Shown here: positions 8,436 to 62,874 of the stretch, one piece after another | Layout of the letters: each line of letters opens with the position of its first letter | Position numbering within the stretch: position 1 is the first letter of the stretch | NCBI GenBank assembly: GCA_025594325.1 | Contig: JANHCV010000001.1 | Span: forward strand, 3,720,001-3,784,000 | Length of the DNA: 64,000 bases | Source: Blastocladiella emersonii ATCC 22665 | Lineage: Eukaryota; Fungi; Blastocladiomycota | Direction: 5' to 3' | Program-made: the position numbers and the translations under genes | Notes under the pieces: model-generated | What the model was told of the DNA's origin: nothing | Databases searched by the model: none | Seen by the model: only the letters and a program-made list of their open reading frames with translations

Positions 8436-10520
8436 ATGACCGTCACGCTGGCCGACTCCGTCCTGCAAGACGCGCGCCACCAGCTTCATGTCGCGCTGGA
8501 CATGGTGCGCCTGCTGCCGTTGCCGCCGCCGCCGAGTTGGTCTGACCCATGCGGGTAAGCGTAGGGCATCGGCAAGAAGGGCCTCGTCATCGCCAAGTCC
8601 GTGTCGGGGATCGTGTCGCGCCTCGCCGACTCGACCTTCCTCAAGGAGCACGGCTTTGAGCGCATGGGCTACCTCGCCCCGCAGGGCGCCGACATGGCCG
8701 AGTGCCCAAGTGTCACCTACCTCGCGCGGCCAGACCCCGAGACGATCCGCCAGATCGCTGGTGTGTACGCATGCTGTGAGCTTGGACTGCGAGTTCAGCG
8801 AGTAACCGCCTTCGGGTAGACCACGTCACGTCCATGGAGGCCGGCTCGGGCTCGGCAACGCACTCCGAGGTCAGCGATAAGCGCTTCTACCTATTCTGCA
8901 TCCCCGCCGCGACGCTGCTCTGCCGCCAGATCCTCGAGGACCGCGGCATCCTCGCCAACGTCGAGGTCCACGACCTCGAGATCGACTTTGTCCCGCTCGA
9001 GTCGGACCTGCTCAGCATGGAGATCCCGTCGCTCTCGCGGCTGCTCGTGGTGCGTTTCGTGGTCACCCCGACGGGACCGATCCACACTAATCGATTTCTC
9101 CCGACTAGTCCCGCGACGTGACCCCGCTCCGCCAGCTCGCGCACGGCCTCATCGCCCTCGAGTCCTCGCTCGGCGCCGTGGCCTCGGTCCGCGGCCGCGG
9201 TCCGCTCGCCCAGGCCTTTGTCGACGTCTACTCGCAGGTCGCCGCCAACCACAACCAGCCCCGCCCCGCTTCCTCGAGCACCTCGCTGATCCTGCTCGAC
9301 CGCACCGTCGACCTCGTGACGCCACTCATGACCCCGATGACCTACGCCAGCCTCATCGAGACGTTCCGCGACGTGCAGTGCGGCTTTGTCGACGTCGAGG
9401 CGCAGGGCACCGGCACCGCCGGCGGTGGCCGCACCCGCAAGTTCAAGCTGTCGCGCGACGAGGATGCTGTCTACGCCCAGCTCGCCGACCTCAACTTTGC
9501 CACCGTCGGGCCCACGCTGCAAAAACTCGCCGTCTCGCTCAAGGCCCAGGCCGACGAGCGCCACACGGCCGACACCATCTCCGCCATCAACAAGTTTGTC
9601 GACAAGCTCCCCGAGATCCAGAAGATGCAGGAGGCGCTGCCCATACGTATGTCCGGCGACTCTCGTGCCGATAAGGTCCACTAACACGTGCAGCGACGTA
9701 GACATTGGTCTCGCCGAGTCGATTTCAGCGAGCGTTGACGAGGACTTCAACCGCGTGCTTGAGGCCGAGCAGAGCCTGGTCTCGGACGGCTCGCTCGATC
9801 CCGACTTTATCGAGGAGCTGATCCTGCGCAGCTACGACCTCCACGTCGTGTTCGCCCTCATCTGCCTCGCGTGCCTGACTGGTTCCGTCAAGGAGAAGCA
9901 GCTCGAGGGGTGGCAGCGCGAAATGATCCTGGTACGCTATGCCGCAACAATTCTGGCATACCGAGCTCACCATCGCCCGCCCGTAGTCATACGGCAACCA
10001 CGCATACCTCGTGTGGACGCGCCTTGAGGCTGCGGGCATCCTCCGTGCCGCTGCCCGCCCTCGCGGATCCTGGGCCGCTGTGCGCGAGTCGCTTCACCTC
10101 GTCGTCCCAGAAGTGCCCGTCGTCGACCCGACCGACGCCGCGTACACGTTCTCGGGCTACGCGCCGCTCAGCGTCCGCGTCGTCGAAGAGTACCTCGGCG
10201 CCGGCCGCGCGTCTTCCGCCGCGGCGGGCGGGGCCGGGTCCAACGTCAGCAACATGGCCGCGGCCATGCTCCCCGGGTTCGGCGCCTCGCCCAAGTCGAG
10301 CACCGACGACCCGCTGCTCCGCCTCCTCCCCGGCCCGTTGATCGAGCTCGGCCCACAGCCGCCAGCTGGGGCGCCCGTTCTCGTCGCGTTCCTCGGCGGC
10401 GTCACCATGGCTGAGGTCAGCGCGCTCCGCCTCCTCGCCAAGCAGACGCGGCGGTCCATCACGGTGCTCGCCACGGACGTGGTCAGCGCGAAGCGGCTTG
10501 TGAACAGTTTTGCGCCATGA
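8436..10520 (+). CDS. VPS33: Sec1/Munc18-family HOPS/CORVET subunit Vps33 (multi-exon)
   Basis: Motifs IDFVPLESDLLSME, LILLDRTVDLVTPLMTPMTYASLI, AYTFSGYAPLSVRVVE and VAFLGGVTMAEVSALR. Confidence 0.88.
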
Positions 10521-56897: not shown

Positions 56898-57823
56898 ATG
56901 CTGCACACGGCGAGCACGCGCCTCGGAATCGAGCCGTTCACGGCCAAGGGCATCTCCCTCAGCAACGAGGACCGCGCCACCTTGAGCATGTCGCTGCTCT
57001 CGCTGCAGGGGTCGCAGAGCTTCGACTGGGTCCGGTTCTGGGGCAAGCTCGTCACCCTCGAGAACAGCCGCGACTACTACGTCGCCACGGCCGGCCACGA
57101 TGCGGATCCGTTCGCGCAGACCATTTTCATCTGGTACCCGCTGCCATCGCCTTGGGAGACGACTGCAAGTGCTAATGTGTGGCCGCGGATGTAGCCAGGA
57201 CGCCATGAGCTGGCTTCAGGCGCCCACCGTCACGGACGAGGAGGTCGGCATCGCCGTCGAGCTCCGGTCCAACTTCATGGGCGACCCGGCGTTCGAGCAC
57301 CCCGTTCCTCCCGCGCGCGACGGCACCGTACGGTTCTCTCGCACTCCAACGCTGAGCGAGCACTCACAGCTTCACCTCCGTGTAGCCGCGCCCGACCCTG
57401 TCCGAGGCCAAGCGCGTGGCGGCGATCGTGCAGGCCGTGCAGCGCGAGGTGACGGTCGTCCCGCGCGGCGCCTACTACCAGGACGCGCTGGGCAAGCTCC
57501 GCCCGAATCAGACGTTTGTCGGCGTGCGGGCGCACGAGCTGACGCACCTGACGTCGTACGTGCACTTCCGGCCGCCAAGCGCGCCGCCGACCGACAAGCA
57601 GCTGGCGCGCGCCGACTACGAGGAGTCGCTCGACGTGCTCGACACGATCGAGGGCGACGCGCCTAAGGGGTGCTGGACCGTCGAGGCGCGGCCCATGATG
57701 GTGCTCCTCAGCAGCCTCGTGTGGCCCGGCTACCACCACTACGCGAGCGCCGTCGGCGGCGGGTTCGGGTCTATCTACGTCGGGTCTGGCCGCAAGAACC
57801 ACGATCTCGGGTTCATGATCTGA
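56898..57823 (+). CDS. RSPH9: Flagellar radial spoke head protein 9 (2 introns)
   Basis: VRFWGKL...DYYVA, FMGDPAFEH, VVPRGAY, DTIEGDAPKGCW, LLSSLVWPGY, FGSIYVGSGRKNHDLGFMI. Confidence 0.92.
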
Positions 57824-57870
57824 TGTGAATGCGGATGTGTTTGCACAACAAGACTCTCTTCGTTTTCTAT

Positions 57871-60800
57871 TCACTCGTTATACCGAACAGTGTTGGCCGT
57901 GAACCCATGCTTCGTCCAATGCTCATCACCCGCAATGAAATCGGTGCGCACGTACTTGGCGCGGTCCACCAGCACCCCGCGCGCATCGTCGTCGCGCCGC
58001 ACCACGATCCCCTCGGGCACCTCGGCGCCGTACGCGCTCGGCATCCCGCGCACCCACGCCTCGGCCGCCTCGAGACTCTCGAGCCCCGCGGGCCACTCGG
58101 TCCCGCTCCACACGGCGCGGACGCGCGCGAGCGGCGGTTCCGGAACTGTCCCCGCTGCCGCGGAGTCTGCCCGCATCGCCGCATCCGCTGCGTCGAGGGC
58201 AGCGTGGAACGCGCCGCGGGACAGGAACGCGCCGCGCGCCACGTCGTACAGGTCGAAGGCGACAAACTGGTCGGGGAGCCCGTGGTAGTGCACCGAGTGC
58301 CGCGCGACCGCCCACTCGCCAAACAGGACGCGCCGGCCGTGGTCGGCGCCGGGGAGCAGGAGGTGCGCCAGCGTGCGCGTGTGCGCGGCGAGCCAGCCGC
58401 GGAGCGGCGCGAACTGCGGGTGCTGCGGCGGGCCGCGCTCGAGGACTGACGAAGCCGAAGACTCGGTGTGCGACGCAACGAAATGCGACCGGTTCTGCGC
58501 GAGGATCTGGAGCCCGTCCAGCGACGCCGCGCGTTCCGCCAAATCGAGCGGCGCGAGCGGAATCGCGTGCAGGCCGAGGTTGGCGCCGTCGATCTTCTCC
58601 TCGACCGTCCACGTCGACGGCGCACCGCCGCCACCCGCTGCGCGCTGCTGGAGTGCCGCGAGGTCGGGCACCACGACGTCGTCGTCAGCGATACTCGCGG
58701 CGCCCGGGAACAGGTGCGCGGTGCGCGGGAACTTGACCATGAGCGAGTCGGGCCGCGTCAGCGAGTCGAGCAGCGCCTGCGTCTGCTGGAACGTGTGGAC
58801 CGTGTACCACGCGCCGTACCGCGCGGCCTCGGGGTCGGCGGGCACCGCCGCAGCGGACGACGACGATGCGGCAGACGACTGCTGCGGGGCCGGCCGGCGA
58901 GCGCCACGCGAGCGGTGACGCGCCTGGCCCGCGTCCGGGAACCGCGGCGGCTTCATCTGCGCGGCAAACTGCGCGACGACGGCGCCCGCGCGGTGCGGCT
59001 CGAGCGTCGGGTGGTCGTGGCGGTTCGCCGCGCGGGCCGCGCAGATCCGCGCGGGCGCGGCAAAGTGGACGCCCATGACCTCGCGCGCGGGCGGGTCGAA
59101 GCAGTTGGCGAACGTGGCGACGCGGTGCGCGGCTGTCGGGTGGCACGCGTCGACGATGAGGCGGAGGTCGGGCGACCGCGCGTAGTTGCTGACGGCGGCC
59201 GCGAGGTCTGCGCCGTCGTCGCTGTCGACTACGACGAACAGCGCGTCCGGCAGCTGCGCCTGCAGGGCGCGGGCGAAATGCGACTTGCCGCTCCCCGGCA
59301 GACCCATGAGGAGCACGATCCGCGGGAGGTTGCCGAGCGAAAACACCTCGGGTCCGCACCGCGCCGGCTCGCGCGGGTACTCGGCGTCCCACCGCGCGAG
59401 CGCGTGCTGCGGCGACCCAGCGTGCCGCTTCCAGCACACGTCGGCGTACGCGCGCACGAAGGCTTCCTGCTCGCTCGTCTCGATACTACCCGGGCGCACC
59501 GCGCGGAGCTGCGCGACCGCCTCGCTCGCGGGCATCTGCGGCGCGGCGCGCAGCGCGCACGCCGGGTCGGGGCACCGGTCTTCGGGCGCGAGCCCCTCGT
59601 CGCCGTCGATCGCGTCGAAGTTGAACTGCGCCGCGATCCGCTGCCGCTCGAGGTCCCACGACACGGTCGCGGTGCAGTGCGTGCACAGCGCGGGCGGGGC
59701 GCGCGAGCCGAAGCGCACGAGGTACGCGGCGATGAAGCTGCCGGTGCGGCCCTTGCCGCCGGCACAGTGGATCAGCGAGCCGAACCCGCCGCGCGCCCCG
59801 TCAAACGTGTGGTACGCGTGCACGACCAGGCGGAGCCAGCAGTCGACCTGCGCCGCGGTCGGCGCGCGGCCGTCGAGGACGGGCAGGTGGACATGCTCGA
59901 TGCGCGGGTTCGCGGCGGCGAACCACTCGGGCGGCCGCGGGTGCTCGGCGGTCGTGGTGGTCACGAAGCCAACACCGAGCTGCGCGAGCGCCTGCACGTC
60001 CTCGGCGCACGTCGGCTGCGCGATCCCGGACACGACGTGCGGGACCTGTCAGCTGAAGAAACGCGGCAGCGCGTGCGGCGTGCGCCCGGTGCGCACCGCG
60101 ATCCGTGCGCCGGGCTCAGTTGGCGCAAGCCAGTCGGTCTCGCGCGTCACGTCGTAGAGCACGCGTGAGTGTACGGCGTGCAGATCAGCCGGTGGCCACG
60201 CGTGGGTGCCGAGAGCGGCGGAACCGGCCTCGATGGCTCGCTGCACTTCGGGCTGAGCGTCGGACTCGAAGATCTGGCCGACGCAGATGGACGTGTCGTG
60301 GGCAACGCGAAGGTCGCGCAGTTTCGGCGTGCAGTACCCGCGGACGCGCGACTCGGCCGGGTCCGTGCGAGCGGCGACGAAGATGGCGGTCCAGAAGCGG
60401 AACACGGCGGCGCGGTAGTGGCCGAGCTTGAAGCAGCAGTCGGCGGCGCGGACGTGGGTGTTGGGCGAGAGCGGGTCGAGCGCGGTGTCGCAGGTCTCGA
60501 GGCAGCCCGCCCAGTCTGCTGCGAGGAACTCGATCGTCGAGCGGGCGTTGGCGAGCGCGGCCGAGGTGGATGGCGGGAGAAGTCGCGACATGGGAAGCAG
60601 CTCGGTCGCTTGGTCGCGGCGTGACGCGGCCGACTTGACCTTGCCCAGCCGGGCGACCTCGGCGGCAAGAAGAGAAGTGTACGCCTCGATCCAGCCCGGG
60701 TCGGAGCGGAGCACTGCGGCCGTTGCCGACACAGATCGGGTGGCGAAGCGGGGTTGCGCGAAAGGAAGGCCAGCCGCACGGCACGCGCGGGCGAGCGCGG

Positions 60801-61017
60801 GGAACCAGACCATCCAGGCGCCCGAGGCCGAGTCCACGTCGTAAGGAAGGTTGGCGTCCCGCGGACCGAGCTCTGCGAGGAAACGATCACGGGCCCGAGC
60901 GTCGAGCTTGGCCCACGCAGCGGGGTAGACGAGCTGAAGCGAGCACGAGTCGAGGCCGAGCAAAGGGACCCACGGCAGGTCGCCAATAGTCACGGTGGGG
61001 GTATCAGTTGATGACAT
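57871..61017 (-). CDS. TPR + dual-specificity Cys phosphatase + P-loop kinase + ATP-dependent RNA ligase fusion, interrupted by in-frame TGA 60051-60049
   Basis: TPR-like HVRAADCCFKLGHYRAAV; HCAGGKGRTG; GLPGSGKS; ligase motifs EEKIDGANLG, LFGEW, FVAFDLYD, EGIVVR, AKYVRTDF. ORFs 60049-61056 and 57871-60033 share one frame. Confidence 0.85.
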
Positions 61018-61341
61018 GGTATGCGCAAGAGTCGAGTTCAGCGAGTTACATTGCAAGAAGAGCGGAAGCGGCCGTGTAGGCCTTTTAGGGGCGGAGAGCG
61101 TCGAGCGAGCGCGTTGGCGAGCGACTCAACCGAGCAGCTCTGACTCGAAGGGCGATCACTCGTTTGATCAGACGGCTATCATGCACATCCCTTGTTCTAT
61201 ACGGAAGAGCGTGATGGACACTGCACGGCCTCAGCCACAGCGGAGGCGCACCACCTCCGCCGCCGCCGGCGCCCCCACCTCTTCGTGGAGGCCACCGCAA
61301 ACTCTCCGCTGTTAGACGTCAAGGAAACAAATGTAAGCGAC

Positions 61342-62874
61342 ATGGAACCGTCCGAGACACTTAGCGCACCGAGCCCGCCCTCGGCCGTCGCGGCCCCATT
61401 CGAGGACGGCGACCTTCCGTCCATCGCGACCATCGGCCATGGCCGCCCGCGCTCCGGCTCGGACCCGGGAGGCTTCAGCTTCTCTGGATCATCTTCGGCG
61501 CTCATTATCAAGTCCATCCGTCCCTCATCATCCACGCCATCATCGCCGCGCACCCCCGACTTTGCCGTCGCGGCGGAGGAGCTGCTCCGCGAGGCGAGTT
61601 CATCGCCACCGCTCCCGCAGCTCGTGGCCGTCGACGACGACAAGGAGCCACTTATCAGCAGCTCAAAGGACGAATCCCTACGCCGTCGCGTTGCCTCATG
61701 GCTCGACCTCCTGCGCGGCCGGCGCCAGCAGCTCGGCGACCTCGCATCGGGCACGTCGAGCGTGGCGCGCGATCTCGGGCGCGTCCTCGTCGTCCTCGTC
61801 AGCGCGTACACGCTCCCCGGGTCGCTGTGGAAGCTCATCACGTACGTGCACCTGCGCAAACGGCGCGCGTACCCGCTCGCGTCGTGGCGCGCGGCCGTGG
61901 TCCACTGGCTCCTGTCGTCAAGCGTGTTTGGCATACGTGGGATGAAGGCGAGACTGCTCGAGCCGGCTGCGGTTCGCGGTGAGACAAGTCTCGAATCGCT
62001 ACCCGACGAGCTCCTTGTCAACGTGATGCAGCACCTTTCGGCCGAGGCGCTCGCCGAGCTCGGGCAGTGCAACCGGCGGCTGCACCGGCTCAGTGAGAGC
62101 GAGGAGGTGTGGCGGCACTTGTTGGAACGCGACTTTGGTTCGCGGATCGGCAAGGCGTTCCCGATGACGCCGCTTGACTTTCGGCGTTCAACCAAGTCGG
62201 GTGGCCGGCTCGGCAAGGCCTCGGCACCGCGGCGCAAGTGGCAGTACCGCGTTCTCGCTGAGACGGCGGCGCTATGCGGGCCGTGCGACTGCCCTCCGCC
62301 AGCGCCGCTCCCGACAGGCTGGCGCCGGTGGCTCTTGCTCACGTCCGGCAACCACCCCAACTGCTGCTACACGCGGTTCGCGCGGCTGCGGTCGCGGTGG
62401 CTTGGGCGGCACCGCGCCAAGTGGTCCGAGGCGAGCGACCCGCCGCGCGTGCTGCTGGCGCGCCTGGCGCTGCACGCGCGGGCGAACCTGTACCATCTGC
62501 CGCTGACGCCGGTCAAGCTGCTCGGGCTCGCCATCAGTCCGCTGTGCGTCGGTCTACTGCACGTGCGGCTGTCGCACATGGTCGTGCACGGTGTGTTCGG
62601 GTCGATCGCGCGCGACCTGCACCAGACAACGCTCAGCATCCTTCGCGACGCGCCGGTCGAGGACGGACACTGGCTCGCGGTGACGGGCCCGCTCGCGGTC
62701 GCGGCGCTGTGCCTGCGCGACGTGGACTGGGCGCTGTCCAGGATCGTGCGGTCGCCGCACCTCGCCATGGTGTGCCGCGTCGTCCTCGCGGTCGCGGCGC
62801 TGGGGTCCGCGGGTGTGTCGCTGTTCGTCCTGTGGCAGATCTATTGCCGCGGCGCGTCGCCGTACGCGTTCTGA
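61342..62874 (+). CDS. F-box protein with flanking hydrophobic (TM-like) segments; start uncertain
   Basis: LESLPDELLVNVMQHLSAEALAELGQCNRRLHRLSESEEVWRHLLERDF is an F-box. Hydrophobic helices lie before it and at the C-terminus. Confidence 0.75.
   Translation: MEPSETLSAPSPPSAVAAPFEDGDLPSIATIGHGRPRSGSDPGGFSFSGSSSALIIKSIRPSSSTPSSPRTPDFAVAAEELLREASSSPPLPQLVAVDDDKEPLISSSKDESLRRRVASWLDLLRGRRQQLGDLASGTSSVARDLGRVLVVLVSAYTLPGSLWKLITYVHLRKRRAYPLASWRAAVVHWLLSSSVFGIRGMKARLLEPAAVRGETSLESLPDELLVNVMQHLSAEALAELGQCNRRLHRLSESEEVWRHLLERDFGSRIGKAFPMTPLDFRRSTKSGGRLGKASAPRRKWQYRVLAETAALCGPCDCPPPAPLPTGWRRWLLLTSGNHPNCCYTRFARLRSRWLGRHRAKWSEASDPPRVLLARLALHARANLYHLPLTPVKLLGLAISPLCVGLLHVRLSHMVVHGVFGSIARDLHQTTLSILRDAPVEDGHWLAVTGPLAVAALCLRDVDWALSRIVRSPHLAMVCRVVLAVAALGSAGVSLFVLWQIYCRGASPYAF

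Follow-up and report, generated by a model that had tools for sequence, protein, structure and literature searches.

The genome sequence of the water-mould-like fungus Blastocladiella emersonii ATCC 22665 contains, within the 64 kb window analysed here (part of contig JANHCV010000001.1), a large gene annotated in GenBank as H9P43_001426 (57871..61017, minus strand). The gene reads as one collinear frame that is interrupted once by a TGA codon, located on a conserved tryptophan (Trp) column. Most probably this is a nonsense allele, TGG having recently become TGA, in a non-essential RNA-repair gene of a strain with a long history in laboratories, and an artificial intron conceals it in the annotation. 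An earlier note on this DNA had put programmed recoding in its headline and offered a recent nonsense allele as a hedge; it is the hedge that holds. The mutation would have been a recent G-to-A transition that made TGA out of the TGG codon for a structural Trp, a conserved residue located in the first core strand of a DUSP23-like phosphatase domain. The gene affected appears to be the single-copy 'Swiss Army Knife' (SAK) RNA-repair gene of the strain. Translation would normally end after 322 residues, and the strain, or this allele, would be without the phosphatase-kinase-ligase enzyme save for a basal leak at UGA-C. The GenBank model regains a long protein only via a probably invented in-frame intron of 51 nucleotides (nt), which deletes the LPRFFSW strand.

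The frame starts with the ATG at 61017 and closes with its own terminator, a TGA followed by A (57873..57871), where the C-terminus corresponds to the end of the B. britannica protein. All features of the gene are given on the minus strand. The upstream part has 322 open codons (60052..61017), is TPR-like, and ends ...HALPRFFS, with homology to B. britannica up to ALPRFFS. The downstream piece has 725 open codons in the same frame, starting QVPHVVSGIAQP. The minus-strand reading across the junction was confirmed as CTG CCG CGT TTC TTC AGC TGA CAG GTC CCG, and the earlier description of an in-frame TGA with some 725 intact codons beyond it was correct. The order encoded is a TPR-like N-terminus, a PTP-SAK phosphatase, a P-loop kinase, and an RNA ligase. 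The PTP-SAK (DUSP23-like) phosphatase domain (59455..60045; Pfam PF22784, E 7.8e-32) covers residues 2-198 of the downstream piece, with the match beginning at profile position 8. Its HCAGGKGRTGS sequence is intact, the HCxxGxxR active site being at residue 94. The polynucleotide-kinase-like module (59215..59316; Pfam AAA_33, E 3.8e-08) spans residues 245-278, with the P-loop GLPGSGKS at residue 249. The RNA ligase nucleotidyltransferase domain (57949..58614; Pfam PF09414, E 4.8e-22) spans residues 479-700 and carries the motif I sequence KIDGAN, with KIDG at residue 485. Judged by these domains, the product would be an RNA end-healing and sealing enzyme. The first in-frame ATG past the stop (59533..59535) is between the phosphatase active site and the kinase P-loop; the earlier note had likewise placed it after the active site.

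The stop (60049..60051) has C as its next base, giving UGA-C, and its position on a conserved Trp column is seen in the alignment of homologues and in the DNA of an ortholog. A total of 38 homologues were found, from Basidiomycota, Ascomycota, Phytophthora, and Andalucia, largely with the same Pfam combination. The frame was aligned with an X at the stop, and 36 homologues cover the site (37 aligned sequences including the B. emersonii copy). In this alignment the LPRFFS codons (60052..60069) form a motif leading into the first core strand of the phosphatase, and the X falls in the final column of LPRFFxW, where 32 homologues have W and the other 4 have F. The B. britannica protein (P0002) reads ...ALPRFFSWLIPG, and its DNA at the site is TCG TGG CTC. 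The B. britannica sequence PRFFSWLIPG aligns to PPNFSWVLPG of human DUSP23 (structure 2IMG), bearing out the claim that the stop occupies the Trp position. The DUSP23 structures 2IMG and 4ERC are the PDB matches of the phosphatase domain and its closest solved structures. An AlphaFold model of the B. britannica domain, with a predicted local distance difference test score of 88.9, has the Trp within strand E23-26, with which the N-terminal hairpin of the fold opens.

Identity to P0002 is 52% across the 725 residues downstream of the stop and 36% across the last 165 residues before it. Each of the two genes has an F-box-like gene as its divergent neighbour (61342-62874 on the plus strand of the window; L001:1227-2723 in B. 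britannica), which makes them true orthologs. This divergent pairing of F-box and repair genes has been kept between the two species despite the 52% identity of the repair protein.

A six-frame scan of the window was made for stops with at least 80 open codons on either side. In the 64 kb scanned, the TGA at 60051..60049 is the only isolated sense-frame stop that has a coding signature both before and after it. The other cases with high GC content at third codon positions (GC3) are in antisense frames of genes on the opposite strand or are within introns. For a nonsense mutation, a stop exactly on a Trp does not exceed what chance would produce. Transitions are the commonest kind of mutation, and 26 transitions are able to create TGA in this gene. 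A TGA on a Trp is the expected outcome because 23 of these 26 strike TGG codons; CGA is rare at the GC3 of 0.89.

The GenBank protein (P0001) has 1009 residues, as against 1045 or more for the full frame. Mapped to the window, it has two in-frame introns, of 66 nt (60779..60714) and 51 nt (60096..60046). The gene models come from ab initio predictors run through funannotate, and the genome paper names no RNA-seq or transcriptome data (PMC9730499). The 51 nt 'intron', GTGCGC...GCTGACAG, removes RTGRTPHALPRFFS, the stop, and the Q that follows. It has GT-AG ends, with the donor G/GTGCGC and the acceptor ACAG/ (junctions marked by slashes), and gtgcg is a common donor in the expressed sequence tag (EST) introns of B. 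emersonii, so this end is typical for the species. The remaining features do not favour an intron. At 0.73, its GC content is above the 0.57-0.67 measured for 13 likely introns of the window. The branch A of its sole branch-like motif is just 3 nt from the acceptor, a distance that is 10-28 nt in the window's roughly 15 likely introns. Introns of 55-333 nt have been reported from B. emersonii ESTs (PMC2773782), and 51 nt is below this range, yet there is one 50 nt candidate intron in the window. The piece encodes the ALPRFFS(W) conserved across the family, the B. britannica ortholog has no intron there, and in the confident B. britannica model the deletion takes part of the strand that holds the Trp. 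On these grounds, the 51 nt 'intron' is probably an artefact of ab initio prediction. The first intron (60714..60779), GTGCGG...CCGCAG, may be a second such artefact. It is in frame, has no internal stop and a GC content of 0.70, and no CTRAY branch motif was found in it by reading the printed sequence.

In the B. britannica ortholog there is a clearly real, AT-rich intron of 54 nt elsewhere in the gene (L001:3202-3255). The approximately 15 likely introns of the B. emersonii window are uniform: they are 50-73 nt, with the donor GT[AG][CT]G, the branch sequence CT[GCA]A[CT] 10-28 nt before the junction, and an acceptor that is mostly TAG or CAG (for example 9647-9701 on the plus strand, and 51428-51367 and 20225-20166 on the minus strand). 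This uniformity could serve to audit the ab initio annotation of the B. emersonii genome.

Several observations weigh against a recent and inactivating nonsense mutation. Apart from the one stop there is no further damage to the gene: it has no frameshift and no second stop, and the catalytic motifs are all intact. Selection was assessed on conserved columns in place of dN/dS, since the B. britannica protein is only 52% identical, a distance at which saturation of synonymous sites would hide any recent relaxation. The majority residue has been kept at 113 of 133 well-conserved family columns (85%), compared to 79% in the intact B. britannica protein, and no relaxed selection was found by this comparison. 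Many of the mismatches fall at the same motifs in both Blastocladiella species. The earlier note had coupled TGG in orthologs with relaxed selection on this allele; the first is seen in the sister species, and the 32 homologues with Trp agree with it, whereas the second is not seen. This lack of decay fits a very young mutation and equally a gene that is still in use. The +4 base is C, the leakiest, whereas the gene terminates at UGA-A. The homologue search turned up no further SAK paralog from B. emersonii. It is also possible that there is an intact second allele of H9P43_001426, because haplotigs were purged from the assembly (PMC9730499), haploid and diploid genomes both occur in the phylum (PMC9457484), and the evidence from the sequencing runs consists of assembled contigs, which cannot show allele fractions. 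As to the intactness of the gene, the region also has open stretches of 566 and 323 codons in other frames. Long open frames survive by chance at such GC content, so an intact frame points to no more than a young or a tolerated lesion. A scan of metagenomes with R at the variable base found no match to either allele.

The stop may alternatively be tolerated or used, although we consider this unlikely. Leakage at UGA-C would then give a trickle of full-length enzyme, gated by the efficiency of termination, for example under stress, or a branch site completed by the mutation would let an 81 nt piece be spliced out. In a wider version, the genome would tolerate TGA at Trp positions generally.

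In the first form, functional leaky readthrough, a near-cognate tRNA (Trp, Cys or Arg) would decode UGA-C, yielding a low and possibly regulated amount of the full-length enzyme, while most of the product would be the N-terminal fragment. The readthrough motifs known from the literature are UGA-CUA(G) and CARYYA. By our own reading, the bases after the stop, CAG GUC, match neither UGA-CUA(G) nor the full CARYYA. A stop with 725 codons beyond it also normally triggers nonsense-mediated decay. It is the base after the stop that speaks for readthrough: in yeast +4 C gives the highest readthrough at all three stops and UGA-C is the leakiest tetranucleotide (PMC4748822), and the true terminator of the gene is the tighter UGA-A. 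The earlier note was right about this context as far as yeast is concerned. Trp is among the residues inserted at UGA and would restore the ancestral protein, with the 725 downstream codons undamaged, but in yeast UGA-C favours Cys-tRNA over Trp-tRNA and it is UGA-A that favours Trp-tRNA (PMC4748822). The hairpin GUCCCG/CGGGAU that had been suggested just downstream does form in the minimum-energy fold, with the 39 nt window at -12.5 kcal/mol, but this is only the 46th percentile among equal-sized windows of the same gene. The 111 nt past the stop fold no better than shuffled sequences (z = 0.18), and the predicted downstream RNA structure is ordinary. Nor is the stop conserved, the codon being TGG in B. 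britannica and the residue W or F across the family. With this lack of conservation and no readthrough signal beyond the +4 C, programmed recoding cannot be kept as the headline, and functional readthrough is on balance improbable.

The earlier note had also taken a TPR-only form to be the default product of the gene. Its basis is one ANAPC3/TPR match in the upstream piece (E 0.0028), which is weaker than the Pfam cut-off. A search of the protein collection with the 322-residue piece found no stand-alone relatives, so there is no evidence for a separate TPR-like protein or for transcript-derived open reading frames ending at the stop.

In the second form, the nonsense mutation would have led to cryptic splicing, with either an 81 nt piece (60096..60016) or the 51 nt piece (60096..60046) removed in frame. 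The product would have a damaged phosphatase and an intact kinase and ligase. The 81 nt pseudo-intron (60016..60096) runs from G/GTGCGC to CGCAG/, and has GCTGAC 33 nt before the acceptor. The G-to-A change converts GCTGGC to GCTGAC, making the A of the TGA the would-be branch A, at an acceptable spacing. The three signals all match the EST introns of B. emersonii, in which GCTGAC is the commonest branch hexamer, G/GTGCG a frequent donor and cgcag an observed acceptor (PMC2773782). The 81 nt candidate therefore carries all three while keeping the frame, and the predictors behind the GenBank model picked the 51 nt version. However, a control count of the same signal set over stretches of the window that are confidently coding gave about 0.7 per kb, with three in H9P43_001426 alone. 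Splice signals were rejected as evidence of splicing due to this chance rate in coding DNA. The 51 nt version has its branch A too close to the acceptor, at 3 nt where real introns have 10-28 nt. The segment has the GC content of coding sequence (0.73) and encodes the family-wide motif, the ortholog has no intron there, and either deletion would take core strands of the phosphatase, as judged from the B. britannica model. Cryptic splicing is thus a distinctly unlikely account of the stop. Were it true, this would be a nonsense mutation caught in the act of turning coding sequence into intron.

Adenosine-to-inosine (A-to-I) editing that turns UGA back into UGG in the mRNA at one stage or another of the life cycle, as happens to premature stops in Fusarium and Neurospora, is highly improbable. 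We know of no mRNA editing in Blastocladiomycota. Editing would restore the ancestral Trp exactly, and in filamentous ascomycetes it is established that 'pseudogenes' intact but for a premature stop are rescued in this way (PMC10776026, PMC11156358); it is there, and not in Blastocladiomycota, that the process has been described. The known fungal editing strongly favours adenosines in hairpin loops with U at -1, and hence UAG and UAA (PMC11156358). The B. emersonii stop has G at -1 and its A is in a predicted stem, so the editing proposed in the earlier note fits poorly.

An error of sequencing, polishing or assembly, the true genome having TGG, is extremely improbable. The assembly was polished by Pilon with short Illumina reads of 65 nt (PMC9730499) and the site is in a region of 70-75% GC, both of which could favour an error. 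The run search matched four runs, each from the same sample and presumably of DNA. For two runs of the sample that was sequenced, X1 (2022, depth about 149) and X2 (2021, depth about 21), Logan contigs cover the site without differences and both have TGA; the X2 contig of 4.2 kb spans 59847..61500. At such depth, substitution errors are rare in HiFi reads. A base-call or polishing error at the stop is very unlikely because these two separate DNA data sets, deposited in different years, agree on TGA. The suggestion that a base-call error was equally possible is by this effectively excluded. The two runs are probably the one PacBio HiFi library and the one Illumina library of the genome paper, which names its reads as SRR19593111 and SRR12507012 (PMC9730499).

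UGA to Trp is the commonest stop reassignment. The TGA codon terminates the repair gene itself and also the genes on either side of it, F-box (62872) and radial-spoke (57821). A changed code with UGA read as Trp, or the insertion of selenocysteine (selenoproteins being widely distributed in early-diverging fungi; PMC9457484), has next to no probability, given that the repair gene and both its neighbours end with TGA, that 64 kb hold no further isolated sense-frame TGA, that an Rfam search over 57000..61500 found no selenocysteine insertion sequence (SECIS) and no other element at E up to 1, and that the position is that of a structural Trp or Phe rather than a redox Cys.

On its 3' side, the repair gene is convergent with the radial-spoke-like gene. 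Both end in TGA, with 47 nt between the stops (57821-57873). Because just 47 nt separate the two stop codons, the 3' untranslated regions of these genes must overlap or be very short.

A recent nonsense allele would have consequences for the use of this annotation and for the study of this strain. The 1009-residue protein given for H9P43_001426 is probably not the product made in the cell; it is without the conserved LPRFFSW strand because the predictor stepped over a stop codon. Short in-frame introns predicted ab initio can hide nonsense mutations, and users of the annotation should be cautious of them. It is possible that ATCC 22665, the standard laboratory strain of B. emersonii, is a natural knock-out of an unstudied multi-domain RNA-repair enzyme, which would provide a ready-made background for complementation tests of the function of the family. 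If the stop is instead read through or spliced around, this would be a neat rescue of a nonsense mutation, although only the +4 C argues for rescue here.

Known systems in which a stop is read, edited or removed each share some features with H9P43_001426 and differ in others. Programmed UGA readthrough, as in MDH1 with UGA-CUA (PMC5133446) and in the viral gag-pol type, is alike in having UGA-C and a long open frame beyond. It differs in that here there is no CUA(G) or CARYYA, the structure is ordinary, the stop is not conserved, and the stop is inside a domain rather than between functional modules. The edited pseudogenes of Fusarium graminearum and Neurospora are similar in that one premature stop is found at an ancestral Trp in a gene that is otherwise intact (PMC10776026, PMC11156358). 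The edited ascomycete stops are mostly UAG, with the A after U, and are conserved across related species, whereas here the stop is UGA, its A comes after G, and the codon is TGG in the sister species. Reassignment of UGA is recognized by widespread in-frame UGA with UGA unused as a terminator, and selenocysteine by a SECIS; neither is found here. The intronization of exon sequence that bears a nonsense mutation is a hypothesis in the literature. The likeness is a nonsense mutation amid splice-like signals that itself completes a branch consensus, and the difference is that such sets of signals are common by chance in the GC-rich coding DNA of B. emersonii.

The gene belongs by descent to the SAK RNA-repair family, with its PF22784, AAA_33 and PF09414 domains, and is disrupted as read in the DNA. 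To our knowledge, no member of this family has been biochemically characterised, and a literature search on the 'Swiss Army Knife' family found nothing relevant. The domain order and catalytic motifs are those of the family, as is the helical or TPR-like N-terminal region before LPRFFxW, but the B. emersonii copy is alone among the 37 aligned sequences in having a stop on the Trp column. By analogy of function, the gene resembles T4 Pnkp plus Rnl and the fungal and plant Trl1, in which an ATP-dependent RNA ligase is likewise joined by a 5'-OH kinase and a 3'-end phosphatase or phosphoesterase. In these systems the order of the domains differs from that of the B. emersonii gene, and the 3'-end activity comes from a DxD acid phosphatase or a 2H cyclic phosphodiesterase, where here there is a Cys-based DUSP23-like fold.

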